Virus record (IMG/VR): IMGVR_UViG_3300032331_003609
Location: 62,001-126,000 of that record
Strand: one strand, 5' to 3'
DNA: 64,000 nt
Below the pieces are notes generated by a model that saw nothing but the letters and a program-made list of their open reading frames with translations, had not been told where the DNA came from and ran no database searches. How positions within the stretch are numbered: the first letter of the stretch is position 1; the number at the start of each line of letters is the position of its first letter. Position numbers and translations under genes: made by a program. This document shows, piece by piece, positions 15,870 through 40,254 of this stretch.

Positions 15870-15974
15870 TTTATTTTATCAATTCAAACGGAAAGATTTC
15901 ACCAAAATGAAACTTAGCAATAGATATAGAGTACTACATTGTATAAACGCGCGGAATTATATTACATTTACACC

Positions 15975-16757
15975 ATGGGGATAAAGATAATGACAATAGG
16001 GGATGTTCACGGAAGAGATACCTGGAAGTTTATGACCCATGGTAGTAGCTATGAGTTCGATCTATGGGTTACTATGTTAAACGAGGGTGCAAATCCAGAA
16101 GATGAGCTTTTTAAAGAAGATTACCCATATTTTGGAGTAGATAAGATTGTTTTTATTGGAGATTATGTAGACAGCTTTACAATTAGCAATGTTGAGATCA
16201 AGAAAAATTTAGAGGATATTATACTTTTTAAAAAAGCACTTCCTGATAAAGTTGTTTTACTCTGGGGAAATCATGATGTTCAGTATTTCATTCCTAATCA
16301 AATATGCAGTGGATTTAGAGCAGAGGCAAAATGGGATTTACACATTCTCTTTGAACACAATAAGGATCTTTTTCAAATGGCTTATCAGATCGACGATTAC
16401 CTTTGGACCCATGCTGGTGTTCTAAAACCCGTTCTTTCTGATATGCTAAAGATGTATCCTGAATTAAAAGAGTTTAAAACAGAAATGGACATTCTGAATC
16501 ATGCTTTTGAAATGGAAATACCGCAGATCTTTCAGGTTGATGGAGCAAGCGGAGGATGGAGCATGTATGGTGGTCCGCTCTGGGTAAGACCCAAACAGCT
16601 TGAACAATATGGTCTTAAATTAAATCAAATAGTTGGGCACACGCCACAAAAGAAATTAATAGAAATAGAAATGGGACACGGGAATAAAATTTGGTTAACT
16701 GACTATATTGAGCATAATGAAGAGTCTGATCTTATTCCATTTATATTAGAGATATGA
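15975..16757 (+). CDS. Calcineurin-like metallophosphoesterase
   Basis: IGDVHG, FIGDYVD, WGNHD, THAG, VGHT. Confidence 0.9.
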   Translation: MGIKIMTIGDVHGRDTWKFMTHGSSYEFDLWVTMLNEGANPEDELFKEDYPYFGVDKIVFIGDYVDSFTISNVEIKKNLEDIILFKKALPDKVVLLWGNHDVQYFIPNQICSGFRAEAKWDLHILFEHNKDLFQMAYQIDDYLWTHAGVLKPVLSDMLKMYPELKEFKTEMDILNHAFEMEIPQIFQVDGASGGWSMYGGPLWVRPKQLEQYGLKLNQIVGHTPQKKLIEIEMGHGNKIWLTDYIEHNEESDLIPFILEI

Positions 16758-17035
16758 AAAAAGAAATAAAAGAAAAAGCTAAAATGATAGCTAATGGAAC
16801 ATATACACCTCCCGAGAAGGAGAAGGTAGAATTGACTTTCGGGATAACAGAGAAGCAATATAAAAAATACCAAAGATGGCGAAATGCAAAAAAGAAAAAA
16901 GAAGGCGAACTTTATGTTGGTGCAATAGGTGGTGCATATTCATTCTGTTTCACGTCAACCGGTATTGGTGAGATAGTGACAGTGAAAGCAGCAGACGGTG
17001 ATGAATTAGATTTAACAGATTATAACACATGGTAA
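16754..17035 (+). CDS. Hypothetical protein
   Basis: ORF with overlapping start/stop inside operon. Confidence 0.7.
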   Translation: MKKEIKEKAKMIANGTYTPPEKEKVELTFGITEKQYKKYQRWRNAKKKKEGELYVGAIGGAYSFCFTSTGIGEIVTVKAADGDELDLTDYNTW

Positions 17036-17634
17036 TGAAAGTAATATTTTTAGATCACGATGGTGTGATATGTCTTTCCAATAACTGGGGAGGCAGAGCA
17101 AAGAAACAGAAGGAATATGGCAGAAAGATGAGTCAATCTATTAATGAACTTCCGGTAGAGGTTAGATTTGACGATTTTGACAAAAAAGCTATTGACGTTC
17201 TTAATTTAATTTTAGAAGAGACAGGAGCTGAAATAGTAGTGAGTTCAGATTGGAAGCGCTGGGCTTCAGCAGATGAACTTGGAGAATATTATGAACAGCA
17301 AGGTATTATAAAAAAACCAATTGCCTGCACTCCTTTTTTTAGGGATCTTCAGGCTGCAGGTAAAATACCAGGGTATGATGATTTTGTATGGAACAGAACA
17401 GATCAATTGGAGCAAGAAAGACATTTTGAAATTCTTGAATGGTTAAAAGAACATCCAGAGATAACACATTGGGTAGCAATAGATGATTTGAATATGGGTA
17501 TACCGGTTAGCACACATCACTACGGAGATTTTGATAGAGAATGGGGTTTAACAAATTTTGTTTGGACACCACAGGAATCCGAGGGAATCAAACAATCGGG
17601 TAAGAAAGAAAAGATTTTAGAATTTTTAAAATAA
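17029..17634 (+). CDS. HAD phosphatase, Swiss-army-knife RNA-repair type (HAD_SAK_2-like)
   Basis: IFLDHDGV, IVVSSDWK, WVAIDD. Confidence 0.75.
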   Translation: MVMKVIFLDHDGVICLSNNWGGRAKKQKEYGRKMSQSINELPVEVRFDDFDKKAIDVLNLILEETGAEIVVSSDWKRWASADELGEYYEQQGIIKKPIACTPFFRDLQAAGKIPGYDDFVWNRTDQLEQERHFEILEWLKEHPEITHWVAIDDLNMGIPVSTHHYGDFDREWGLTNFVWTPQESEGIKQSGKKEKILEFLK

Positions 17635-18041: not shown

Positions 18042-18466
18042 GGGTCCGTCTGGCTTTGATCCGGATGCGAATGGTAATACTACACGCAGAGGTATGGTAC
18101 TCATCCTCTTTAATCTCGGTACAAACCAATAAACGACAACACAATAGCTCGTCAAGAAATCGGTGCATCAATTATCAACATGGCGTTTGCGAACGCTCCT
18201 GTTGCTTTAGCAGCGTAATTCTTCCCCTGGTGACTTGGGTGGAACAGTAAGTCATAAACCGGTATAGCAATATGCCAAACAGTTTTATCCTTTTTTACAA
18301 AATGGATTGGTGGTTAACGTACTTAAATCGTACGGCCCTTACTGATCAGCTTAAAACGTAGATCAAAAAATACGGAGCAGAATTAAAAACTCAGTTCTAA
18401 GCGTGTGAGACGTTAGTGTTATGATTACTTTCGGAGACAGGGGTTCGAATCCCCTCGGATCCACCA
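18042..18466 (+). ncRNA. ssrA: tmRNA with 27-aa tag DNTIARQEIGASIINMAFANAPVALAA
   Basis: 5' GGGTCCG pairs with 3' CGGATCC-ACCA; T-arm GGGGTTCGAATCCCC; tag ORF 18135..18218 after AATAAAC, ending ALAA-TAA. Confidence 0.92.
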
Positions 18467-18472
18467 TTATAT

Positions 18473-18547
18473 CGTAGGGTAGAGCAGTGGTAGCTCGACG
18501 GGCTCATAACCCGTAGGTCGGAGGTTCGAATCCTTCCCCTGCAACCA
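18473..18547 (+). tRNA. tRNA-fMet (CAT), initiator
   Basis: C1:A72 mismatch, GGG/CCC anticodon stem, encoded CCA. Confidence 0.92.
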
Positions 18548-27568: not shown

Positions 27569-27656
27569 GGAGAGATGGCAGAGTTGGTCGATTGCGTCAG
27601 TCTTGAAAACTGAAGAACGGGAAACTGTTCCGTGGGTTCGAATCCTACTCTCTCCG
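27569..27656 (+). tRNA. tRNA-Ser (TGA)
   Basis: GGAGAGA/TCTCTCC, long variable arm, TTCGAAT, G73. Confidence 0.95.
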
Positions 27657-27699
27657 CAGGCGCAATTTCGTACCTTATACAGATATAGGGTATGAATAA

Positions 27700-27771
27700 G
27701 CATCTTAAGCATTGCAGGCGATGCGCCAGATTTGTAATCTGGATAACTCGGTTCGATTCCGGGCGGATGCT
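27700..27771 (+). tRNA. tRNA-Thr (TGT), atypical D-loop
   Basis: CCAGA-TTTGTAA-TCTGG anticodon arm, TTCGATT T-loop, GCATCT/GGATGC acceptor. Confidence 0.75.
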
Positions 27772-27864
27772 CAATACTAACGTAAAATAAGTACACTAAC
27801 ATAATATCTGTTAGAATACAAAAGTTCGGTAGCAAGGTTATTAACGCGTTTTATAAAGATATAG

Positions 27865-27985
27865 GCCGGTGTGGCGGAATGAATAATCTTGAATTCGAAT
27901 AGAGATTATTAGACGTCCCGTAATTCTAGAAAAGGTGGTGTATCCGAAATGGACATCGTGAAGGTAGTCAACCCTTCCACCGGCA
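27865..27985 (+). pseudogene. tRNA-Leu-like element with 30-nt D-loop hairpin insertion and no clear anticodon arm
   Basis: GCCGGTG/CACCGGC-A acceptor, TGGCGGAAT..AGACG, variable arm, GAAGG/CCTTC T-stem. Confidence 0.55.
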
Positions 27986-28094
27986 CCTTATTTAAGATAT
28001 TCTAAGAACAGCGTCGAGCCGGATTTTGCGTCGGTCTTAGATTAGATTTGTCCAATGGGAGAGCCGGCCGCGACCCCGGACAAATCACTATATT

Positions 28095-28168
28095 GGTTCT
28101 GTAGCTCAGTTGGATAGAGCGCCACCCTTCTAAGGTGGATGTCATTGGTTCGAATCCAATCGGGATCA
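28095..28168 (+). tRNA. tRNA-Arg (TCT)
   Basis: Canonical cloverleaf, CCACC-CTTCTAA-GGTGG. Confidence 0.93.
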
Positions 28169-28173
28169 CAATT

Positions 28174-28308
28174 AAGGTTGATTGGGGAATGGTTATGTCT
28201 ATAGCTCGAGCGTGGATACTGGCTGGCATAATCGGAGTTTGGAGGTATTCACCTAAGTAATGCCAATCGTAAAAGAGATCGTCCACTGAACCATCTTTCT
28301 CTTTCCTT
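28174..28308 (+). ncRNA. Candidate structured ncRNA inside the tRNA operon
   Basis: Nested helices AAGG/CCTT, ATGGTT/AACCAT, GTGGA/TCCAC, TGGCAT/ATGCCA, AGGT/ACCT. Confidence 0.5.
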
Positions 28309-28315
28309 AAAATAT

Positions 28316-28390
28316 GTTGGATGTAGCCTAATGGTAGGGCAAATGCTTGTGGCGCATTACGCGTGGGTTCGATCCCCATCATTCAACCCA
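28316..28390 (+). tRNA. tRNA-His (GTG)
   Basis: G-1:C73 8-bp acceptor, AATGC-TTGTGGC-GCATT, CCA. Confidence 0.93.
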
Positions 28391-28394
28391 ATAT

Positions 28395-28470
28395 CTAGAT
28401 GTAGAGGAGCCAAGTTTATCTCGCTGCTTTTGGAAAGCAGAGCACGCTGGGGCGGAGCCAGCCATTTAGA
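28395..28470 (+). tRNA. tRNA-Pro (TGG) with non-canonical D- and T-loops
   Basis: C1:G72, A73; CTGCT-TTTGGAA-AGCAG; T-arm GCTGG-GGCGGAG-CCAGC. Confidence 0.7.
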
Positions 28471-28538
28471 CAAAAAGATCAAAGAGACCGCTAAATCGAG
28501 TTAGTGAAAATCTACATTCTCTTTGGTCTTTTATATTA

Positions 28539-28612
28539 GGACTTGTAACTCAGTTGGTTAGAGTGCAACACTCATAATGTTGAAGCCCCTGGTTCGAGCC
28601 CAGGCTGGTCCA
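28539..28612 (+). tRNA. tRNA CAT, probably Ile2 (lysidine-modified, reads ATA); elongator Met not excluded
   Basis: Canonical cloverleaf CAACA-CTCATAA-TGTTG; G1:C72. Confidence 0.85.
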
Positions 28613-28698
28613 CGAAATAGTGTCTTGGTACGCTCTGAAGAAATTCAACGACAAGGTCTCGGTAAGCGAAACGCGTTCGATCTTGCCCAAAATATAAA

Positions 28699-28780
28699 GG
28701 CCCCCTGTTGTAATTGGTAGCCAATTCAGATTTAGGATCTGATGTCGCAAGACGTGTCGGTTCGAGTCCGACGGGGGTCA
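28699..28780 (+). tRNA. tRNA-Leu (TAG)
   Basis: TCAGA-TTTAGGA-TCTGA, variable arm TGTC-GCAA-GACG, TTCGAGT. Confidence 0.92.
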
Positions 28781-28852
28781 CAACAAGATTAGGTACAAAA
28801 AGATATTAAGAAACTAAACCTAAAAACGATATATAATATTCAACTAAACAAA

Positions 28853-28936
28853 ATGAGAAACCAGAATCAATATAATTATTACCCAATGCCTGAACAAGGT
28901 AATGAGGGAAATTATATGGACACAGATCTGGGATAA
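28853..28936 (+). CDS. Leader peptide 2 MRNQNQYNYYPMPEQGNEGNYMDTDLG (putative attenuator)
   Basis: 27-codon ORF after GATATATA (28828-28835) and before terminator. Confidence 0.75.
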   Translation: MRNQNQYNYYPMPEQGNEGNYMDTDLG

Positions 28937-28956
28937 CATTTTTTAAATATATTTTG

Positions 28957-28989
28957 AAAACCCAGATCTCAATAAGGTCTGGGTTTTTT
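28957..28989 (+). terminator. Intrinsic terminator/attenuator upstream of tRNA operon 2
   Basis: CCCAGATC-TCAATAA-GGTCTGGG stem plus T6. Confidence 0.85.
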
Positions 28990-28993
28990 ATTT

Positions 28994-29066
28994 GGGGATG
29001 TAGCTCCAGCGGTAGAGCGCGTGACTGTTAATCACTAGGTCGTAAGTTCGAATCTTACCATCCCCT
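28994..29066 (+). tRNA. tRNA-Asn (GTT)
   Basis: GGGGATG/CATCCCC, CTGTTAA loop, TTCGAAT. Confidence 0.93.
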
Positions 29067-29071
29067 CAGAT

Positions 29072-29145
29072 TGCAAGATAGTTCATTTGGTGAGAACACT
29101 GGATTCATAACCCAGAGGTGATGAGTTCGAATCTCATTCTTGCGA
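29072..29145 (+). tRNA. tRNA-Met (CAT), probably elongator
   Basis: TGCAAGA/TCTTGCG, TTCATAA loop, TTCGAAT. Confidence 0.85.
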
Positions 29146-29150
29146 CAAAT

Positions 29151-29222
29151 GCTCCCGTCGACTAGCGGTTAGGTCACCTCCCTTTCACGGAGGTAGCACG
29201 GATTCGAATTCCGTCGGGAGTA
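29151..29222 (+). tRNA. tRNA-Glu (TTC)
   Basis: CCTCC-CTTTCAC-GGAGG. Confidence 0.92.
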
Positions 29223-29227
29223 CAAAT

Positions 29228-29308
29228 TGGGATATCGCATAGTGGCAATTGCGGCTGACTGTAAATCAGCTCTCTTTGAGTTCGGCGGTTCGAGTCCGTC
29301 TATCCCAA
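29228..29308 (+). tRNA. tRNA-Tyr (GTA)
   Basis: GCTGA-CTGTAAA-TCAGC, long variable arm, TTCGAGT. Confidence 0.93.
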
Positions 29309-29314
29309 CAATAC

Positions 29315-29712: not shown

Positions 29713-30879
29713 ATGAAAATTGATTTTTGGTATAGCAATATTATTCCAAAATCCGGAATTCAGGATCTACTTGAAGAAATAGACGAGGATGTTTTATTTA
29801 AGAATATTGATACTGATACAGTAAATACTAATAAATTAAATTTTTTAGTCTTTACGTGGGAAACAAAATGGGCATTTTCCAACACCTACTATACACATTC
29901 CGACGAGTTTATAAGATTACTATCAAGACTTCAGGATAAAGATTTTTATTTTATAGCAGATTTTTCTGGAGAAGCTCACACACGTCCTGACGAAAATAGT
30001 TTATTGTTCCTAAATAAATTAAGGGATAATAAGATCAATATAAATCGGATAATTGTTGCAAACAATGATTCTTCCAAAATAGGAATTAATAAAATAAGAT
30101 ATGAATCATTTATACTTAACACGTGCTTTTTTCCTAATTTCTTTTTGTCAACATGTAATCATCTGGATAATATCCTAGGTAACCAGCAAATAAAAAATTC
30201 TATAATACCTGATAAAAAATTCTTATGTCTCAATCGTAGAATGTTCCATCATAAGTACAAAGTTATAGAGGAATTATTCCATAGAGGATTATTAGAAGAT
30301 ACTAGATTTAGCTGGGTAGATAATAAGGATAAAAAAAATCTATTCAATAAAAATCTGAACTCATATTTAGGGATAGACATAAATAATTTTAAATCAATTC
30401 AATTAGAAGGTGATGTAATGTATGGTAGCGATTTATCAAGACATGAAGAATATCTTTATACTGTAAATCCTGATTGGTATTATAAGAGTAAAGTTAATAT
30501 TATCACTGAAACAATATTGGAGGGAAAAGAAATTCACATAACAGAAAAAACGTGGAAGGCAATTTATTTAGGAATTCCTTTTGTGATTTATGCATCAAAG
30601 AATCATCTTAAGATCCTAAGAGAAATGGGGTTTAAGACATTTAACACATTGATCAACGAAGATTATGATGAAATGATTGGAGATGCTAAACTAAAACAGA
30701 TTATAGATAGTGCTGAAGAATTAGCTAGAATTTATAATACCCCAGAAGTTTTAGAGATATGCAGATTTAATCAGAAAATTTATTCAGATAAAATACATCG
30801 TAAGAATATTTGTAAAAATTCTTTTTTGAATAGGATAGTTGATATTAAAAATAATACTATTAAATTAAAGATCTTTTAA
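29713..30879 (+). CDS. Single-domain paralogue of the 1770..4265 repeat (GT10-like ET..TEK motif)
   Basis: KFLCLNRR, SKVNIITET..IHITEKTWKAI..GIPFVI. Confidence 0.55.
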   Translation: MKIDFWYSNIIPKSGIQDLLEEIDEDVLFKNIDTDTVNTNKLNFLVFTWETKWAFSNTYYTHSDEFIRLLSRLQDKDFYFIADFSGEAHTRPDENSLLFLNKLRDNKININRIIVANNDSSKIGINKIRYESFILNTCFFPNFFLSTCNHLDNILGNQQIKNSIIPDKKFLCLNRRMFHHKYKVIEELFHRGLLEDTRFSWVDNKDKKNLFNKNLNSYLGIDINNFKSIQLEGDVMYGSDLSRHEEYLYTVNPDWYYKSKVNIITETILEGKEIHITEKTWKAIYLGIPFVIYASKNHLKILREMGFKTFNTLINEDYDEMIGDAKLKQIIDSAEELARIYNTPEVLEICRFNQKIYSDKIHRKNICKNSFLNRIVDIKNNTIKLKIF

Positions 30880-33562: not shown

Positions 33563-33635
33563 GCGGGAGTAGCTCATTTGGTAGAGCGATAGCCTTCCAA
33601 GCTATAGGTGGCCAGTTCGAGCCTGGTCTCCCGCT
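33563..33635 (+). tRNA. tRNA-Gly (TCC)
   Basis: GCGGGAG/CTCCCGC, U73, ATAGC-CTTCCAA-GCTAT. Confidence 0.95.
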
Positions 33636-33698
33636 CCGCCCTAAACCAGAATATGTCTAATAAACTATTCTGGTTTATTATTATAAAATAGGTTTAGC

Positions 33699-34249: not shown

Positions 34250-34480
34250 ATGATTTGGATTATTTACATTTTAAGCGTGGGGTATTGCTTATACAAGTTA
34301 GCAAAAAGACATCAAAAAAATGATCTAGGTGGAGGTATTGGTACATCTCCTGGATTGGATACTATTATGGTAGTCGTATTGGCTCCTTTGTTGACCGTAG
34401 TGGACGTATCGTTAACATGGATCAGAATATATAAGGAAGCTGAAGAAGCAAGGCGTAGGAGAACTAATACAATGCTTTAA
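34250..34480 (+). CDS. Small membrane protein, hypothetical
   Basis: Two hydrophobic segments. Confidence 0.6.
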   Translation: MIWIIYILSVGYCLYKLAKRHQKNDLGGGIGTSPGLDTIMVVVLAPLLTVVDVSLTWIRIYKEAEEARRRRTNTML

Positions 34481-34493
34481 TAATTAAATACAC

Positions 34494-34654
34494 TGGCCGG
34501 TGATGAAAAGCGTACGCACGGCAGACATACCCTCCTGTCTCGGGGGCGCGGATAACAAGACAGATAAATGGTAATGGGTTGACCACACGCTTGCAAGCAT
34601 AAGTGCCATTTATTGAATTGCCGCATGGAGGTTCGAATCCTTCCTGGCCAGCCA
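34494..34654 (+). tRNA. tRNA-Asp (GTC) with very large variable-region insertion
   Basis: TGGCCGG/CTGGCCA, G73, CCA; CCCTC-CTGTCTC-GGGGG; GGAGG-TTCGAAT-CCTTC. Confidence 0.75.
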
Positions 34655-34680
34655 CTAGAAATATTCTGGATAAATTTGAA

Positions 34681-35673
34681 ATGAAAGAAATAATAATCGT
34701 AGGATCTTATTGTAATACTGAAAAAAAACTTCTCTGCCTAATTGATCTGATTGCTAAGGCCAAAGAAAATAATATGGACATATTGGTCTATGGAAGATAT
34801 CCTATTCCCGAATACGTCCAATCCATGTGCGACTATTGGATTTATGACAAATCCAATCCAGTATTTAAAACAGATAGAAAAAATTTCATTTGGTATAAAA
34901 ATTTTGGTAAAAAAATAATTAGAACTGTAGAGAATGACTGGGGATTTGCAGCAATAGAGCAAATTATAAAATCTCTAGGAGTAGTTAAAGCTTTCAGCTA
35001 TGAAATTGCTTACTGGGTTAACTATGATGTTGATCTAACTAATTTTCAAAAATTTAAATCTTTATGCTCTGAAAATTTTAAATCACATAGCTGTGTAATG
35101 TATCCCTGGTCAAATAATGGAATAGGGGTTTGTCTAACATCAATAGGATTTAAAATTAATGAATCATATGCTAGATTAAAAGGGGTTATAACAAAAACAA
35201 ACTATATCTCAATTTTTAAAAGTGACAATTTTATTCCGGAAGATATTTTTAGAAAGATGGTAGAAAGCTCTGAATTGGATTATTTTATATCAGAAGAGTA
35301 TACACCGATGAGGGCTTCAATTAACTCTGAAGGTGAAAGATTAAATGGAGAAATTCCCGAAGAGTTTAAGAAAACAAAATCGTATTTTGGGAGATGCTTT
35401 ATAGGAACAAGCAGAAATAGCGGTTCTAAGGTAGTTTACATGTCATCGGTTAGAGAGGAAATAAAAGAAATAGTTTTAAATTTTGGTAGTGATGATATCA
35501 CATTTTATGATTTGCAACTGGACAAGTACGGAGCAACTGAAATAAAAATTCCAGATGTCTTCCCCAAGAAGCTTTTGATCAAATCTATCAATGGGAATTC
35601 TATTGATGAATTATTGGACGATAAACTAGACGATGATTATTTTAGACTTAATGAGATAGAAAATATAATATAA
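34681..35673 (+). CDS. Hypothetical protein, GT-like
   Basis: Start moved to MKEII (track start lies inside the tRNA); YWVNYDVD. Confidence 0.55.
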   Translation: MKEIIIVGSYCNTEKKLLCLIDLIAKAKENNMDILVYGRYPIPEYVQSMCDYWIYDKSNPVFKTDRKNFIWYKNFGKKIIRTVENDWGFAAIEQIIKSLGVVKAFSYEIAYWVNYDVDLTNFQKFKSLCSENFKSHSCVMYPWSNNGIGVCLTSIGFKINESYARLKGVITKTNYISIFKSDNFIPEDIFRKMVESSELDYFISEEYTPMRASINSEGERLNGEIPEEFKKTKSYFGRCFIGTSRNSGSKVVYMSSVREEIKEIVLNFGSDDITFYDLQLDKYGATEIKIPDVFPKKLLIKSINGNSIDELLDDKLDDDYFRLNEIENII

Positions 35674-36534: not shown

Positions 36535-37143
36535 TTATTTTGAATGCATTTTTTTATCCGAGCATTTAATTTCAGATTTTTCCCATTCAACTAAAGGTCT
36601 TTCATTAGGAAAAGAAAAACATCTCCACTTCTTTTGTTTTTCGAAATAAATATGCTCTTTTAATATGGAGGGAATAGCAGCATTTGTCTCAACTCTTTTT
36701 GCTGGATTATCAAAAATTAAATCGATTATAACAGTAATACTTTCAGTATCATCCCATTTACGAATTTGTTCTTCAAGAAGTCTCCATTCTCCCCTATTTA
36801 GGTATTGGTTTTGTAATATACTATTTAAGTATGAAAAAGTTTGTCTAAGATTTTCCATATTATCAGAGAACGTTGCAGCAGGAGCTCCGTGACCTTTGTC
36901 ATAAACATTTGATCTATAGTCATCCTCGTCTGATGTTTTAATATTTGGCTCTTTATAGAAATCCATCGATCCTCTATTCACATTTGTTGGTCTATTAGTA
37001 GATCTATACTTGATCCATACTGGTTGTTCTAATTTTTGGGAATAAAGAATTTCAAAAACTTGATTCTTTACTCTAACTGTATCCTCTGCATTAACACCTA
37101 TTGATAGTGTTATAATTAATAATAATGCTAGAATTTTTTTCAT
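36535..37143 (-). CDS. DNA/RNA non-specific endonuclease (His-Me finger) with signal peptide
   Basis: MKKILALLLIITLSIGVNA signal; YDKGHGAPAA, N..LQ...LNRG.W..LE. Confidence 0.88.
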   Translation of the reverse strand: MKKILALLLIITLSIGVNAEDTVRVKNQVFEILYSQKLEQPVWIKYRSTNRPTNVNRGSMDFYKEPNIKTSDEDDYRSNVYDKGHGAPAATFSDNMENLRQTFSYLNSILQNQYLNRGEWRLLEEQIRKWDDTESITVIIDLIFDNPAKRVETNAAIPSILKEHIYFEKQKKWRCFSFPNERPLVEWEKSEIKCSDKKMHSK

Positions 37144-38762
37144 CTGTTTAATTTTAATTTATTAACCGGAACATTTACATGTTTACCGAATGGCATCTTA
37201 TGACTAGTAGTCATTGCCCATATCATCTTTCTGTGCCATTTTGGTTTCTCTGGATCTTCTGCCCCTCCGTCAGTGAAGTAAATCATGCAAGCTAAATCTT
37301 TACCTTTTTTGATTAGATTTTCTTCTACCCACTTAATAGGAGGATCGAATCCACCTCCGTTACCCCCAGTAGACATTTGTTTAGATTTATCTAATGGCTG
37401 AGCTGCAGATGCTAATCTATCAATTCCTCCAGAAGGAGGTTCCATACCATCGCTGCAGTAAATGATGTATATCTCTTTTGGCTGGAACGTCTTTAATACA
37501 CTTCTAGATTCTGCTAAGAAAGTATTATATTCATCCTGACCTATACTTCCTGACGTATCAACTGCAATAACTACAGTTCCGAATCCCTCTTCCTTTCCCT
37601 TTAATCCCGGAAGATATATGTCTCTTGATGCATATCTTCTATTAGGTATCTTATACATAGTAGGATCATCATCAGATTCAGATACGTATCTTTGTAAAAT
37701 TTTTCTCCAATCAACCTGTGGGTTTACTAAGTCCTCTATGAATTTCCTAAGAGCCGGAGAAACCCCTCCGCCACCTGTTCCTTTATTGGCTGCTCTTTCT
37801 GTTATCTCCTGTATTTTCTTAGAAATGTCTTTTTTATCTACTGGTTCTTTCTTCTCTATTTTCTCGTCCCAGTCTTTTTTATCCTTGTCTTCACCTTCAT
37901 CACTCCACTCTTCACCAGGTTCTCCCTCTTCGTCAGATAGCTCACCGTCTTCTCCTTCACCATCTCCAGGTTCACCATCTTCACCCTCACCATCTCCGGG
38001 TTCGCCATCTCCAGGTTCGCCATCCCCAGGTTCGCCATCTTCACTCTCACCATCTCCAGGTTCACCGTCTTTACCGTCTCCCTCTTCATCAGATGGCTCA
38101 CCGTCTTCCCCTTTGTCATCTTCTTTACCGTCTTCCTTCTTTTTGTCAAATTCTTTTTTGTCTAATTCTTGATCTTCACCCCTTACAGAATCAAGTTCTC
38201 CCATTATTGTTTCCGATGTTTTTTCTGTGTTTATTTCACCAGGTTCTAAAACATCACAATATGATTTATATGAGCTGTCTCCTCCTGATTTTTCTAATTC
38301 AGAATATATTTCTTCTGCAGATTTTCCTTCAAATTTAGGATCTTTGTATTTAATAGGAAGTATAGATTTTCCTATTCCTTCTAAATATGGCTCAGCTGCT
38401 ATATCGCATGCTTGATTCCATATAGATTGATCCTTATCTTGTTTTCTATCAAAGTGCTGTAGTGCAAGATGTATAATCCCCTGGTTAATTGCCCAGATGA
38501 CTTCATCATCACTCATTTCTAGTACATTTTCTGGATTAAATATAAAAACAGTTCCATCAGTTGAAAAGAATTTGCATTCTTTAGAAACTGCTACTGGAAT
38601 TTCTGATAGTACATTTCCAAAAAATCCTCCTTTCATTAAGATTTTAGAAATACACCTTTTCACCTTCATGATGGATTTTTCGTAATCCTCCTGTGTCATT
38701 CCATAATTGGAAAAGTTTTCCTTTAATAATTGATACTCTTTAAAATTTCTTAGTCTTCTCAT
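37140..38762 (-). CDS. VWA-domain partner of MoxR ATPase (degenerate N-terminal metallopeptidase-like domain, acidic linker, C-terminal VWA)
   Basis: FSTDGT, N.ACDIA, DGEPG repeats, VVIAVDTSGSI, MIYFTDG. Confidence 0.85.
   Translation of the reverse strand: MRRLRNFKEYQLLKENFSNYGMTQEDYEKSIMKVKRCISKILMKGGFFGNVLSEIPVAVSKECKFFSTDGTVFIFNPENVLEMSDDEVIWAINQGIIHLALQHFDRKQDKDQSIWNQACDIAAEPYLEGIGKSILPIKYKDPKFEGKSAEEIYSELEKSGGDSSYKSYCDVLEPGEINTEKTSETIMGELDSVRGEDQELDKKEFDKKKEDGKEDDKGEDGEPSDEEGDGKDGEPGDGESEDGEPGDGEPGDGEPGDGEGEDGEPGDGEGEDGELSDEEGEPGEEWSDEGEDKDKKDWDEKIEKKEPVDKKDISKKIQEITERAANKGTGGGGVSPALRKFIEDLVNPQVDWRKILQRYVSESDDDPTMYKIPNRRYASRDIYLPGLKGKEEGFGTVVIAVDTSGSIGQDEYNTFLAESRSVLKTFQPKEIYIIYCSDGMEPPSGGIDRLASAAQPLDKSKQMSTGGNGGGFDPPIKWVEENLIKKGKDLACMIYFTDGGAEDPEKPKWHRKMIWAMTTSHKMPFGKHVNVPVNKLKLNR
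37900..38115 (-). repeat. Low-complexity (DGEPG)n coding repeat
   Basis: About 15-nt tandem units inside the VWA gene. Confidence 0.8.
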
Positions 38763-38763
38763 A

Positions 38764-40254
38764 TTAGATTTCTTTCATGAAACCCTTATATTTAGTAACA
38801 AAAGGTGTTACATATTGTTCAAGAGAAGTATCTCCTAAATAGTTTTTAACTTCTGGATGTGTTCTCTTAATCATATTTAATCCGCTCATTGCAATTTCTC
38901 CAGAGTTTAAATTTGTTAGATAAGTGATGAAATTGGTAAATTCATCTTTGCTTAACTGCTGTCCCGAATTATATTTAGAAATCATATACATAACAGCATA
39001 AGATTTTCTTAGGTCATATTTGCCAGAGGAAGACATTGGTAATTGTATAGTTGGATCTGTCGGATCAGAAAACACTTTAGTGATTCTATTAATAGGCCAA
39101 ACCTTAGTTGTCTCTAAGAAGTCTGTGATAACTGAAGATACTTTTTTTCCAAGATGCTTATTGAATATCTTAGATATTTCCAATTCACTTAATTGAGTAC
39201 CGTTTGTCTCTGCTTCTTCTTTTCTGTCCTGATATTCTCTAGCTGCATAATCCCATGCTCTAGGTGTAACACCCATTGTTGTATCATAGGATGATAAAGA
39301 TCCTGGCATCATATAGAAATACTCCTGCATTAAATCAACAAATGAAACCACATCATCGCTTAATCCTTTTTTTCTTGCCCAGCCTGTCCAACTCGAAGGA
39401 TCAGATATAAGATTTACCTGTGCAAATCTATTAGCAAGTGCAAAACTCATTGGTCTAATTAATCCTCCTGGTTCATCTTCTGGTCTATTTGCAGCAGCAA
39501 GAATTAACCATTTGCTAGGTATCTTATAATTAGCACCTGCGATTTCTCTGTCTAGTACAACTTTAAGCATTGCAGCTTGAACCGACGGATGAGCTCTGTT
39601 GATCTCATCTAGGAATATAATTCCGCCTTTATCATCTGGACCATTATCTAATGGCCATATCATAGGAAGGTAATTTACAGATCTTTTAACATCACCATAT
39701 TTTTTATCAGCTTCTGCTCCAGGTAGACCTGCAACGTCAGTTGGCTCCATCAGACTAAGAATAACCTCTATTACAGGAACACCCATATCTTCAAGACCAA
39801 ATGACTTTACTATCGAGGTTTTTCCTATTCCAGGAGCACCCCAAATTAAAAGGGGTCTTCCAGATTCTGGGTTTTTAAAATGATATGTTAACTCCTTTTT
39901 AAGTTCAGGTGCGCTGACATCATCTATTTCTGGATCTTGTGTCTTTTGTGCAATCTTCCAAGCTGGATCTGATTCGCTCATTTCGTTTTCAAATTTTCTT
40001 GTGAATTTATAATCGCTTCCTTTTGCTCCTTCAGGAAGATGTATCTTTATGAATGGCTCTGGTGATGCCTTGTCATCAAAGCTTTCCGATTCAGGATTAT
40101 ACTTCTTATCCCTAACAGGAATTTCATTCTTATCCTGAGCTTTTACTAAATTCATTAGCCAATTTCCAGCTTTTCTAGCAATATCAACCCCTTTCGAAAA
40201 AAGATTAGCCTCATTTACCGAGTTGAATGTTTTAAAGTTCTGTATTCTTTTCAT
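38764..40254 (-). CDS. MoxR-family AAA+ ATPase
   Basis: WGAPGIGKT, IIFLDEINRA, AAANR, ALANRF. Confidence 0.92.
   Translation of the reverse strand: MKRIQNFKTFNSVNEANLFSKGVDIARKAGNWLMNLVKAQDKNEIPVRDKKYNPESESFDDKASPEPFIKIHLPEGAKGSDYKFTRKFENEMSESDPAWKIAQKTQDPEIDDVSAPELKKELTYHFKNPESGRPLLIWGAPGIGKTSIVKSFGLEDMGVPVIEVILSLMEPTDVAGLPGAEADKKYGDVKRSVNYLPMIWPLDNGPDDKGGIIFLDEINRAHPSVQAAMLKVVLDREIAGANYKIPSKWLILAAANRPEDEPGGLIRPMSFALANRFAQVNLISDPSSWTGWARKKGLSDDVVSFVDLMQEYFYMMPGSLSSYDTTMGVTPRAWDYAAREYQDRKEEAETNGTQLSELEISKIFNKHLGKKVSSVITDFLETTKVWPINRITKVFSDPTDPTIQLPMSSSGKYDLRKSYAVMYMISKYNSGQQLSKDEFTNFITYLTNLNSGEIAMSGLNMIKRTHPEVKNYLGDTSLEQYVTPFVTKYKGFMKEI

Follow-up and report, generated by a model that had tools for sequence, protein, structure and literature searches.

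A giant tRNA-Asp-like RNA family of freshwater jumbo phages with an inferred self-pairing helix and apparently no decoding role

Phage tRNA clusters encode, besides ordinary tRNAs, several stable RNAs that resemble tRNAs or lie among them. The class II tRNAs (Leu, Ser and Tyr) possess a 3-bp D stem, a 13:22 mismatch and a variable arm emerging after position 44, while bacterial tRNA-Asp is a class I tRNA with a 4-5-nt variable loop, and its strong, evolutionarily conserved identity determinants are G34, U35, C36, C38 and G73 (PMC9976931). The tRNA cluster of phage T4 encodes species 1 RNA (rnaC) and rnaD, oversized stable RNAs of unknown function, and tmRNA, which has no anticodon arm, uses the G3-U70 alanine identity and carries a tag ORF and pseudoknots, is another tRNA mimic. 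Bacterial and phage Y RNAs (YrlA) mimic tRNA as well, with their 5′ and 3′ ends forming a Ro-binding stem and the gene lying next to rsr, which encodes a Ro60 (TROVE) protein (PMC4201824). The allo-tRNAs found in metagenomes are class II-like tRNAs with G73, 8/4 or 9/3 acceptor/T domains and diverse anticodons including GUC, and are serylated (PMC7609411). Non-proteinogenic tRNAs, such as cell-wall tRNA-Gly, are dedicated to aminoacyl transfer off the ribosome, and the phage Mu Mom enzyme uses Gly-tRNA as a co-substrate for a non-ribosomal reaction (PMC13219725). Palindromic pairing, as in HYER1, is an accepted RNA homodimer motif (PMC12990946), and ROOL and GOLLD are homo-oligomeric RNAs encoded near phage tRNA clusters. 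Here we describe a 161-nt tRNA-shaped RNA gene that founds a family for which our literature searches found no description.

The gene lies at positions 34494-34654 of the 64,000-nt window, the whole stretch of phage DNA analysed, which is part of a 244,850-bp phage record (IMG/VR IMGVR_UViG_3300032331_003609) containing a single copy of it. The initial annotation had described it as a tRNA-Asp with an intact acceptor stem, G73, CCA, GTC anticodon arm and T arm, a lengthened D loop and a large branched insertion in the variable region, and this observation was confirmed. The features are as follows.

34494..34654 (+), the whole RNA gene, 161 nt including the encoded CCA, with a pyrimidine at -1.
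34494..34500 (+), 5′ strand of the acceptor stem (UGGCCGG), pairing with 34644-34650 (CUGGCCA) in 7 of 7 pairs.
34503..34528 (+), D arm with a 3-bp stem (AUG/CAU) and a loop AAA[insert]CGGCAGA carrying A14, A15, G18, G19 and A21.
34510..34517 (+), D-loop insert GCGUACGC, a perfect 8-nt palindrome.
34530..34546 (+), anticodon arm with a 5-bp stem (CCCUC/GGGGG) and a 7-nt loop (CUGUCUC), the anticodon GUC at 34537-34539 and C38 at 34541.
34548..34624 (+), the 77-nt variable-region domain, comprising P1a (34548-34551/34621-34624; GCGG/CCGC), P1b (34556-34558/34618-34620), an internal loop (34559-34562/34615-34617; family consensus AAUA/GAA), P1c (34563-34573/34604-34614) and a three-way junction bearing P2 and P3; the variable region includes the helix AUAAAUGGUA/UGCCAUUUAU.
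34575..34587 (+), P2 hairpin with the invariant core GGGUUGACCAC.
34589..34598 (+), P3, the self-complementary 10-mer GCUUGCAAGC, an inferred intermolecular dimerisation helix.
34627..34643 (+), T arm (GGAGG, UUCGAAU, CCUUC).
34644..34654 (+), 3′ strand of the acceptor stem (34644-34650), discriminator G73 (34651) and CCA (34652-34654).
34250..34480 (+), a 76-aa ORF with two predicted membrane helices, a frequent upstream neighbour.

Single-sequence evidence alone would not separate this RNA from chance. ARAGORN did not call it, with or without intron search, Rfam (including the tRNA model RF00005) gave no match even at E<=10, with RF00023 matching only the true tmRNA at 18042-18466, and the thermodynamic fold was no better than that of shuffled sequences (z = +0.25). 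In contrast, the comparative evidence was decisive. By nhmmer and a covariance model built for the family (R1), one copy was found in each of 95 distinct loci, which scored 123-165 bits against 20-45 bits for ordinary tRNAs, and the window copy scored 151.4 bits over 34494-34652; the IMG/VR scan returned at least 119 matches. In the alignment of the 95 members, every helix named in the initial annotation covaried, with 99.1% of cells paired and changes on both sides in 30 of 40 pairs, whereas none of 500 shuffles reached this and slid controls gave 42-54% paired. All seven acceptor pairs formed in all of the first 36 homologues with many compensatory changes, which also distinguish close relatives, and the D stem covaried as GC/AU/UA/GU types. 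The top mutual-information pairs all coincided with predicted pairs, plus the tRNA 26:44 pair (A:C 48, G:U 30), and conserved G-U pairs fixed the + strand as the RNA strand. A decaying pseudogene, which the initial annotation had named as the refuting outcome, was thereby ruled out, since the RNA is 96.6% identical to a relative whose flanks are only 75-82% identical and is conserved with covariation in more than 100 contigs.

The RNA is close to core in these phages, with one copy per genome in 19 of 22 large related phage records and in 11 of 12 complete ones. A blastn search of two family members against 50,697 GenBank phage records gave no match, so no cultured phage carries it at that sensitivity, and a scan of bacterial genomes mostly returned chance pattern matches, with seven true members, all on short contigs binned into MAGs. 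A search of sequencing runs returned only DNA metagenomes, from lakes and other fresh water, and no RNA run, so that expression, size, charging and oligomeric state are inferred from sequence alone.

The interpretation in the initial annotation was only partly supported. The RNA is tRNA-shaped with an Asp (GUC) anticodon, G73 and a large structured variable-region domain, and is not a group I intron, as had been proposed; among the options offered, an ncRNA built on a tRNA scaffold or a decoy is closer to the evidence than a functional tRNA-Asp. However, it is not a class I tRNA-Asp that acquired an insertion. The conserved tertiary nucleotides U8, A14, G18, G19, G53, U54, U55, C56, A58 and C61, as well as A15, are invariant in 95/95 members and A21 occurs in 94/95, but the core is that of a class II tRNA, with a 3-bp D stem, a 13:22 mismatch and a D arm nearly identical to that of the phages' own tRNA-Leu. 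In addition, the first pair is U1-A72 (94/95) rather than the G-C of bacterial tRNA-Asp, full CCA is encoded in only 9 of 95 members, and one of the described terminal hairpins is a self-complementary dimerisation element, as inferred below, rather than a hairpin. The D-loop insert, which lengthens the loop by about 10 nt in the window copy, is absent in 25 members, short (11-17 nt, often palindromic) in 37 and a long non-palindromic hairpin in 33, and about 18 of 95 members carry a bulged base in the T stem. An alternative pairing of AGAC in the D loop with GUCU in the anticodon loop was rejected, because C36 is invariant while the proposed partner column varies G/A/U.

The five strong aspartate determinants are kept, with G34, U35 and C36 in 95/95, C38 in 90/95 and G73 in 94/95 members, even though 76 members were retrieved with a pattern blind to the anticodon. 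Conversely, the loop positions flanking the anticodon do not follow the rules of decoders: position 33 is U in 46, C in 40 and A in 9 members, and position 37 is U in 85, C in 8 and A in 2, compared with U33 and a purine at 37 in 498/500 each of the canonical tRNAs of the same loci. These positions are not free, as position 37 is mostly U and position 33 mostly a pyrimidine, so some other reader of the loop may exist. The RNA coexists with canonical tRNA-Asp(GUC) in 8 loci and in 8 of 14 large genomes, and it persists in six genomes with 0-6 tRNAs in the 20-40 kb examined. A genuine decoding isoacceptor, in which the altered loop and the large domain confer resistance to, or shield it from, host tRNA-Asp-directed anticodon nucleases, is therefore considered unlikely, although it could draw on the full tRNA core with all five determinants, the location in tRNA operons, RNA-repair-type domains near the phage tmRNA, the U33 of the window copy itself, and the absence of a canonical tRNA-Asp from the window's own phage record, which is, however, only 86% complete; phage tRNAs are proposed to escape anticodon nucleases through loop mutations (PMC10264068). 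Besides the loop and the bulged T stems, an 18-bp rod plus a three-way junction and a dimer interface is far beyond any V arm known to enter the ribosome.

Within the variable-region domain, all three P1 helices covaried. The P2 hairpin, with the consensus GGGUWGACCAC, is the most invariant stretch of the RNA, with G83, G84, U86, G88, A89, C90, C91, A92 and C93 in 95/95 members and a closing pair covarying as G-C 57 / U-A 7, and the 11-mer occurs once in the whole phage genome. P3 is a perfect 8-12-nt palindrome in about 91 of 95 members, with 28 distinct 12-mers, and its central pairs covary (UA13/GC7/CG5/AU3 and GC24/CG4) although they are sterically impossible within one strand. An isolated P3 hairpin was calculated to be worth 0 to -4 kcal/mol against -16 to -27 kcal/mol for the duplex, and full-length cofolding gained -15 to -19 kcal/mol, implying a homodimer. 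The palindrome alignment was centred on the palindrome, so its pair statistics are partly built in, and a DNA-level cause of the palindromes is unlikely but not formally excluded; however, the long D-loop hairpins of the same RNAs have non-palindromic loops, so loops do drift when they are not selected.

The invariance of P2, and the finding that the domain never occurs with another anticodon or outside this scaffold in the loci searched, could also suggest that the tRNA body is only a chassis for processing and stability and that the function, as a protein- or RNA-binding module, lies wholly in the domain. This is doubtful, as a chassis would not keep G34, U35 and C36 invariant, C38 and G73 nearly so, and U1-A72 over about 100 diverged sequences while the neighbouring loop positions and stems vary. 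It is very unlikely that the domain is an intervening sequence removed to leave a class II-type tRNA-Asp of about 95 nt. The domain is closed by a helix directly at the V-arm position, and a 4-nt bulge, a 3-bp helix and a 3-nt loop strand distantly recall a bulge-helix-bulge motif, but the geometry is not a true (3-4-3) one, no group I or II intron matched in Rfam, no splicing endonuclease or RtcB was found in the phage, and bacteria lack the endonuclease, as the controls showed; a search for Rnl1 (RNA_lig_T4_1) likewise found nothing but was uninformative, because its control was not detected. An invariant hairpin and a selected palindrome also argue for a role in the mature RNA.

The context suggests maturation like that of the neighbouring tRNAs. 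Spacers of 4-5 nt separate the RNA from adjacent tRNA-Ser and tRNA-Leu in many loci, the -1 base is U in 82 and C in 13 of 95 members, C74 occurs in 95/95, and the 3′ context, G73-C74-A, is the same as in the phages' canonical tRNAs. Among the neighbouring genes only the 76-aa membrane ORF recurs, on the same strand and a median of 98 nt upstream in 50 of 95 loci; part of this is ascertainment, because 35 of the loci were found through this ORF, and it does not demonstrate a functional link. No enzyme recurs.

Some features argue against charging by AspRS. U1-A72 replaces the G1-C72 that is strictly conserved in bacterial tRNA-Asp and helps position the 3′ end in E. coli AspRS, and G10 occurs in only 57/95 members, although G2-C71 is present in 93/95. 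Class II synthetases approach tRNA from the variable-loop side, so that an 80-nt domain there could block AspRS rather than be tolerated. Serine identity is not excluded either, since SerRS reads G73 plus a long variable arm, and the RNA has G73, G2-C71 and a large variable region; it would then be a recoding or toxic tRNA at Asp codons. This reading is very unlikely, because C72 is absent (A72 in 94/95) and C11-G24 occurs in only 25/95, so the Ser set (G73, C72, C11-G24 and the V arm) is incomplete; SerRS ignores the anticodon, which would leave the invariance of GUC and C38 unexplained; the 7/5 acceptor/T architecture is not allo-tRNA-like; and the loop is unfit for decoding. G73 also departs from the A73 of Leu and Tyr identity.

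No partner enzyme was found. Searches of the phage genome detected no AspRS-type (tRNA-synt_2) domain, tRNA_anti-codon OB fold, PolyA_pol/CCA-adding enzyme, GatB, DUF2156 (LPG_synthase_C), FemAB or Leu/Phe-transferase (Leu_Phe_trans) domain, and the search for LanB-C (Lant_dehydr_C) domains also found none but was uninformative, as its control was not detected. A GatCAB reading of U1-A72 is considered unlikely, since the Bacteroides control genome lacks GatB as well. An ATE_C-like aminoacyl-tRNA transferase gene lies 0.7 kb from the RNA in one phage but is present in only 1 of 23 large records, so it is not a family-wide partner. A Y-RNA-like partnership with Ro60 was prompted by a 553-aa ORF of the window's phage with a weak TROVE match (27.5 bits), and the Bacteroides control genome has a TROVE protein. 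This was rejected as very unlikely, because none of 22 other large records has TROVE or a relative of that ORF, while 19 of them carry the RNA; the ORF lies 48 kb away, the RNA has no GNCGAAN0-1G motif and no 5′/3′ Ro-binding stem, and no Rfam Y RNA matched.

A decoy or sponge that need not be charged, mimicking tRNA-Asp to neutralise a tRNA-Asp-directed defence nuclease or AspRS itself, with the dimer giving avidity for a dimeric target, is possible but unlikely. It is consistent with the conserved anticodon and C38 amid altered flanking positions, the inferred dimerisation and the persistence of the RNA independently of the tRNA repertoire, and a viral tRNA is reported to neutralise the PARIS defence system (PMC11464382). 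However, an anticodon-nuclease decoy would not need G73, C74, U1-A72, G2-C71 and a perfect 7-bp acceptor stem, yet all are conserved; no tRNA-Asp-specific defence nuclease is known in the presumed Bacteroidota hosts; and sequestering AspRS would also starve phage translation.

Taken together, we interpret the locus, with moderate confidence, as encoding a mature, structured RNA of about 160 nt that is processed like a tRNA, recognised by AspRS, dimeric and not used in decoding. What the analysis establishes is the anatomy: a complete class II core with a 7-bp acceptor stem, U8, a 3-bp D stem, A14, A15-U48, G18G19, A21, the 26:44 pair and a canonical T arm; an anticodon loop always carrying G34 U35 C36 and nearly always C38; G73; and a domain made of an 18-bp rod with its internal loop, an invariant hairpin and a self-complementary 8-12-mer. 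The mechanism, including expression, charging and dimer formation, is inference. In this view, the RNA would be transcribed inside the phage tRNA operon, cut by RNase P after the -1 pyrimidine, trimmed at its 3′ end and given its CCA by the host; host AspRS would recognise and probably aspartylate it, as exactly the five strong determinants are held fixed; it would not be an ordinary elongator, since selection for U33 and purine 37 is gone, some members have a bulged T stem and the bulky domain sits on the variable-loop face; two molecules would join through P3 into a two-fold symmetric dimer; and P2 would be a docking site for an unidentified partner. Its net role would be that of a dedicated, non-ribosomal tRNA-Asp mimic, either a carrier of activated aspartate for a non-ribosomal reaction or a high-avidity ligand for a dimeric tRNA-Asp-binding protein such as AspRS. 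More tentatively, and unlikely on present evidence, two complete, aspartate-charged tRNA-Asp bodies held in two-fold symmetry could engage both sites of the dimeric AspRS at once or hand activated aspartate to a phage reaction, which would be a new functional class of phage RNA beside tRNA, tmRNA and Y RNA.

As tRNA detectors and Rfam are blind to it, a widespread ncRNA has gone unannotated inside the tRNA arrays of these freshwater jumbo phages, and since a second kind of oversized tRNA-like RNA lies in the same clusters, such arrays may hide more tRNA-derived RNAs. The conservation pattern separates what an aminoacyl-tRNA synthetase needs (anticodon, C38, G73) from what the ribosome needs (U33, R37), making the family a ready test system for tRNA identity outside translation. 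The palindromic helix predicts a symmetric tRNA dimer, a natural object not described in the literature that we could search. If the RNA is charged, it points to an unknown use of aspartyl-tRNA by phages, or to a new way of manipulating a host synthetase or a defence nuclease.

Compared with the described systems, the RNA shares with bacterial class II tRNAs, especially tRNA-Leu, the cloverleaf with a 7/5 acceptor/T architecture, the D arm UG-NUG-GAAUUGG(U/C)AGA-CAN, the A15-U48 Levitt pair and a variable arm emerging between positions 44 and 48, and tRNA-Leu is the best non-family hit of the model (38-45 bits); it differs in the 77-nt variable region with a three-way junction instead of a single short hairpin, G73 instead of A73, the GUC anticodon, the lack of the U33 and R37 rules and a D loop that may carry an extra hairpin. 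With canonical tRNA-Asp(GUC) it shares the five determinants, G2-C71 and a similar anticodon arm (CC.CC-CUGUCAC-GG.GG against CCCUC-CUGUCUC-GGGGG), but it is class II, and all 20 distinct canonical phage tRNA-Asp start with G1. T4 rnaC is analogous in location, as is rnaD, and has a canonical T arm, CCGGGUUCGAAUCCCGG, near its 3′ end, but there is no homology, as R1 scores rnaC at 15.2 bits, covering only the T-arm region, and rnaC has no GUC anticodon arm, P2 motif or palindromic P3. The concept of a chargeable tRNA kept away from translation, or used off the ribosome, is that of the non-proteinogenic tRNAs and of Gly-tRNA use by Mu Mom, but those are normal-sized class I tRNAs with known transferases, whereas here no transferase was identified and a giant extra domain and an inferred dimer are present. 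The allo-tRNAs have a 12-bp acceptor domain in 8/4 or 9/3 form, ordinary V arms and highly diverse anticodons, while this family is 7/5 and always GUC. As in homo-oligomeric structured RNAs, a self-complementary segment is conserved as a palindrome through sequence change, implying symmetric self-assembly in a phage-associated, tRNA-adjacent setting, but the RNA has no sequence or structure relationship to them, is five to ten times smaller and is built on a complete tRNA. Finally, YrlA and tmRNA, like this RNA, are tRNA mimics with T-arm and D-arm features that are processed, here by inference, by tRNA enzymes, and tmRNA is encoded in the same phage clusters, but here the ends form an acceptor stem rather than a Ro-binding stem, the gene is not adjacent to rsr, an anticodon arm is present, and there is neither G3-U70 nor a tag ORF.

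The DNA belongs to a 244,850-bp IMG/VR virus record, of which the window covers bases 62001-126000 and which was estimated as 86% complete. The record represents a jumbo myovirus, with a tail sheath, a large terminase and collagen-like fibres. By terminase, its nearest cultured relatives are distant ones at 30-35% identity, namely Sphingomonas phage PAU, Tenacibaculum PTm1 and a Flavobacterium phage, while the nearest uncultured relatives are 'huge phage' records. The DNA was found in lake and other freshwater metagenomes only. A tmRNA and 13 tRNAs are carried in the window, but none of them is a tRNA-Asp, and none was found anywhere in the record. The features bearing on the locus are as follows.

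15939-16757, a calcineurin-like phosphoesterase ORF just upstream of the tmRNA.
17029-17634, an ORF with the HAD domain of 'Swiss Army Knife' RNA-repair proteins, which together with the preceding ORF suggests an RNA-repair module.
18042-18466, the tmRNA (tag ARQEIGASIINMAFANAPVALAA), followed 6 nt later by a tRNA-Met, the two spanning 18042-18547.
27569-29309 and 33563-33637, a cluster of 11 tRNAs plus a separate tRNA-Gly, including Asn, His and Tyr but no Asp.
29713-30879, a 388-aa ORF, at the place where a canonical tRNA-Asp sits in the close relative L006.
34250-34480, a 76-aa ORF with two predicted membrane helices, conserved in at least 80 viral contigs.
34464-34655, minus strand, a 63-aa antisense ORF that overlaps the RNA gene.
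34681-35673, a 330-aa ORF.
36535-40254, minus strand, a DNA/RNA non-specific endonuclease ORF followed by a DUF2201 metallopeptidase/VWA-like protein and an AAA-type ATPase, which looks like a VWA-ATPase pair; this block is conserved with L006.

The 161-nt element lies in a 200-nt gap between the 76-aa and the 330-aa ORFs. The observation in the initial annotation held, as every structural element it listed is present at the locus, whereas its interpretation was supported only in part. The element was not called by ARAGORN with or without introns, nor by Rfam at E<=10, and its minimum-free-energy fold was no better than those of shuffles (z = +0.25), so the case rests on comparison. The antisense ORF is spurious: it clusters across 40 loci only because the RNA is conserved, and should not be annotated as a gene.

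To search for homologs, the 76-aa ORF was first used as a query and retrieved 80 viral loci, and nhmmer with the 161 nt hit about 40 of them just downstream of that ORF. All 36 non-redundant copies have a 7/7 acceptor stem with many different sequences. A MAFFT alignment yielded an RNAalifold structure of 40 pairs, 28 of them with compensatory changes, and a covariance model (R1) built for the family separated members from ordinary tRNAs cleanly (123-165 bits versus 20-45 bits); E-values from R1 are rough because calibration was shortened, but the bit scores are not affected. IMG/VR was then scanned with a pattern taken only from the extra domain and the T loop, and so blind to the anticodon, which returned at least 119 stretches, and 76 of 80 loci examined contain a member. 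On those 76 members (68 distinct), 99.1% of cells pair and 30 of 40 pairs change on both sides; no shuffle out of 500 reached these values, and sliding the partners dropped pairing to 42-54%. A mutual-information scan on 95 distinct members ranked predicted pairs at the top and added two pairs, one extending the hairpin P2 and the other being the tRNA tertiary pair 26:44 (A:C 48, G:U 30). Conserved G-U pairs fix the strand.

Among 22 large related records, 19 carry exactly one copy, including 11 of the 12 that are at least 90% complete. By contrast, no GenBank phage was found to have it, and in 185,579 prokaryote genomes only seven true copies appeared, all on short contigs binned into MAGs, six of which are Bacteroidota; this is a weak pointer to the host phylum. 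There is no cultured phage or host. Compared with a close relative, the RNA is 96.6% identical while the flanks are 75-82% identical, and the few differences in the acceptor stem are compensatory. The upstream 76-aa ORF lies a median of 98 nt upstream of the RNA in 50 of 95 loci.

The core of the RNA is a complete tRNA, with U8, A14, A15, G18, G19, U48, G53, U54, U55, C56, A58 and C61 invariant in 95/95 members and A21 in 94/95. It is a class II core: the D stem has 3 bp with a 13:22 mismatch, and the D arm is almost the same as that of the phages' own tRNA-Leu, which is also the best non-family hit of R1. The D loop varies, carrying no insert in 25 members, a short and often palindromic insert in 37 (as in the window), and a 20-29-nt hairpin in 33. 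The long hairpin variant GGGUUGU-CUCAGUU-AUGACCC, e.g. in the family member at L090:2645-2815, has a covarying 7-bp stem and a conserved 7-nt loop, and may be a second functional module in a subfamily. The variable region is a 77-nt domain made of a rod of 4 + 3 + 11 bp, interrupted by a 5′ bulge and a conserved AAUA/GAA internal loop, and of a three-way junction bearing the hairpin P2, whose 11-mer GGGUWGACCAC is invariant, and the element P3. The internal loop resembles the AGUA/GAA loop-E or sarcin-ricin consensus, although this is only our inference.

In about 91 of 95 members P3 is a perfect 8-12-nt palindrome, from which we infer a dimerisation element. There are 28 distinct 12-mers, for example GCUUGCAAGC, AGCCGGCU, GCCGGCCGGC, GCUAGCUAGC, UAGCGCGCUA and GGCGGCCGCC. 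The two innermost pairs covary (UA13/GC7/CG5/AU3 and GC24/CG4), yet they enclose 2 and 0 nucleotides and so cannot form within one strand. Because the alignment was centred on the palindrome, these statistics are partly built in; as an independent control, shuffled P3 segments reached 8 nt or more in only 4% of trials. Computed energies agree with this reading, in that P3 is worth 0 to -4 kcal/mol as a hairpin but -16 to -27 kcal/mol as a self-duplex, and full-length cofolding gains -15 to -19 kcal/mol. The long D-loop hairpins of the same RNAs have ordinary, non-palindromic loops, so palindromy is not a general mutational habit of these genomes. Palindromic pairing is a recognised RNA homodimer motif (PMC12990946).

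In the anticodon arm, G34, U35 and C36 are invariant, and C38 occurs in 90/95 and the discriminator G73 in 94/95 members, whereas position 32 is C/U, position 33 is U46/C40/A9 and position 37 is U85/C8/A2. The five fixed positions are exactly the strong aspartate determinants conserved across life (PMC9976931), while the relaxed positions are the ones that a decoding tRNA cannot relax: among 500 distinct canonical tRNAs in the same loci, U33 and purine 37 each occur in 498. Roughly one member in five also has a bulged base in the T stem. Deviations from tRNA-Asp are U1-A72 (94/95), canonical phage tRNA-Asp always starting with G1, and a variable position 10. The family coexists with a normal tRNA-Asp(GUC) in the same cluster in 8 loci and in 8 of 14 large genomes, and persists in six genomes that have only 0-6 tRNAs in the 20-40 kb examined. 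Therefore, it is neither a replacement for tRNA-Asp nor a codon-supply gene, and behaves as a near-core ncRNA of this phage group.

The genomic context is suggestive of tRNA-like maturation. In many loci the RNA is separated by 4-5 nt from tRNA-Ser upstream and tRNA-Leu downstream, and relatives carry tmRNAs with tags such as ...MTFEDLMSFVGADYAVAA in the same clusters as the giant RNA. The -1 base is a pyrimidine in 95/95 members, the 3′ context G73-C74-A matches that of the neighbouring tRNAs, and CCA is encoded in only 9/95. This fits RNase P cleavage, 3′ trimming and CCA completion by the host. The phage has no CCA enzyme of its own.

Taken together, the conserved family, its covarying fold and its complete tRNA core are established by the sequence comparison, whereas maturation, charging, dimerisation and function are inferred without RNA evidence of any kind, the oligomeric state and charging being predictions. 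Our preferred reading is a dedicated tRNA-Asp mimic that would be recognised by AspRS, stay off the ribosome and work as a symmetric dimer, with P2 as a docking site. It could either carry aspartate to a non-ribosomal reaction, for which the use of Gly-tRNA by phage Mu Mom is a precedent (PMC13219725), or act as a ligand or decoy. Three points count against aspartylation: U1-A72; the approach of class II synthetases to tRNA from the variable-loop side; and the fact that G73 plus a long arm is also the SerRS signature.

A search for a partner gave nothing consistent. No AspRS-like, OB-fold, GatB, DUF2156, FemAB or L/F-transferase genes were found in the phage. A 553-aa ORF of the same phage record, outside the window (G000:C1:47237-48898, i.e. 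L324:9237-10898 +), has a weak but above-threshold TROVE (Ro60) match, but no Rfam Y RNA lies within 20 kb, and the ORF is absent from the 22 related large phage records used for the co-occurrence tests (0 of 22). In one complete 130-kb phage (L335), a 224-aa ORF (L335:10793-11467, minus strand) matching Pfam ATE_C (arginine-tRNA-protein transferase, C-terminal domain; 27.8 bits) lies 0.7 kb upstream of the RNA (L335:9926-10096, minus strand), but such a gene was present in only 1 of 23 large records.

A second kind of oversized tRNA-like RNA, 96-144 nt long, was observed in related phage tRNA clusters (L012:573-712, L013:2219-2362 and L008:2650-2745). It has the acceptor AGUCAGG/CCUGACU with A73, a canonical T arm and the same D arm with a hairpin insert, and is not called by ARAGORN. 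The L008 copy has the loop UCGCUUG, again with C33 and U37, while the longer copies replace the anticodon region with a domain of about 65 nt.

Literature searches found no description of the giant RNA. tRNA-derived RNAs as such are already known, and what we rate as new here is a distinct form of them, which would move towards a categorically new one if the charged dimer is confirmed. The RNA is built from, and in our reading works like, a tRNA, but it fails the defining tests for an elongator tRNA-Asp, for the Leu/Ser/Tyr class II identities, and for allo-tRNA, tmRNA, YrlA and tRNA introns. It likewise fails those for phage T4 rnaC (L084:4909-5047, minus strand); this T4 species 1 RNA folds far better than shuffles (z = -4.6) and ends with a canonical T arm, so it too is a tRNA-derived RNA in a tRNA cluster, though unrelated in sequence.
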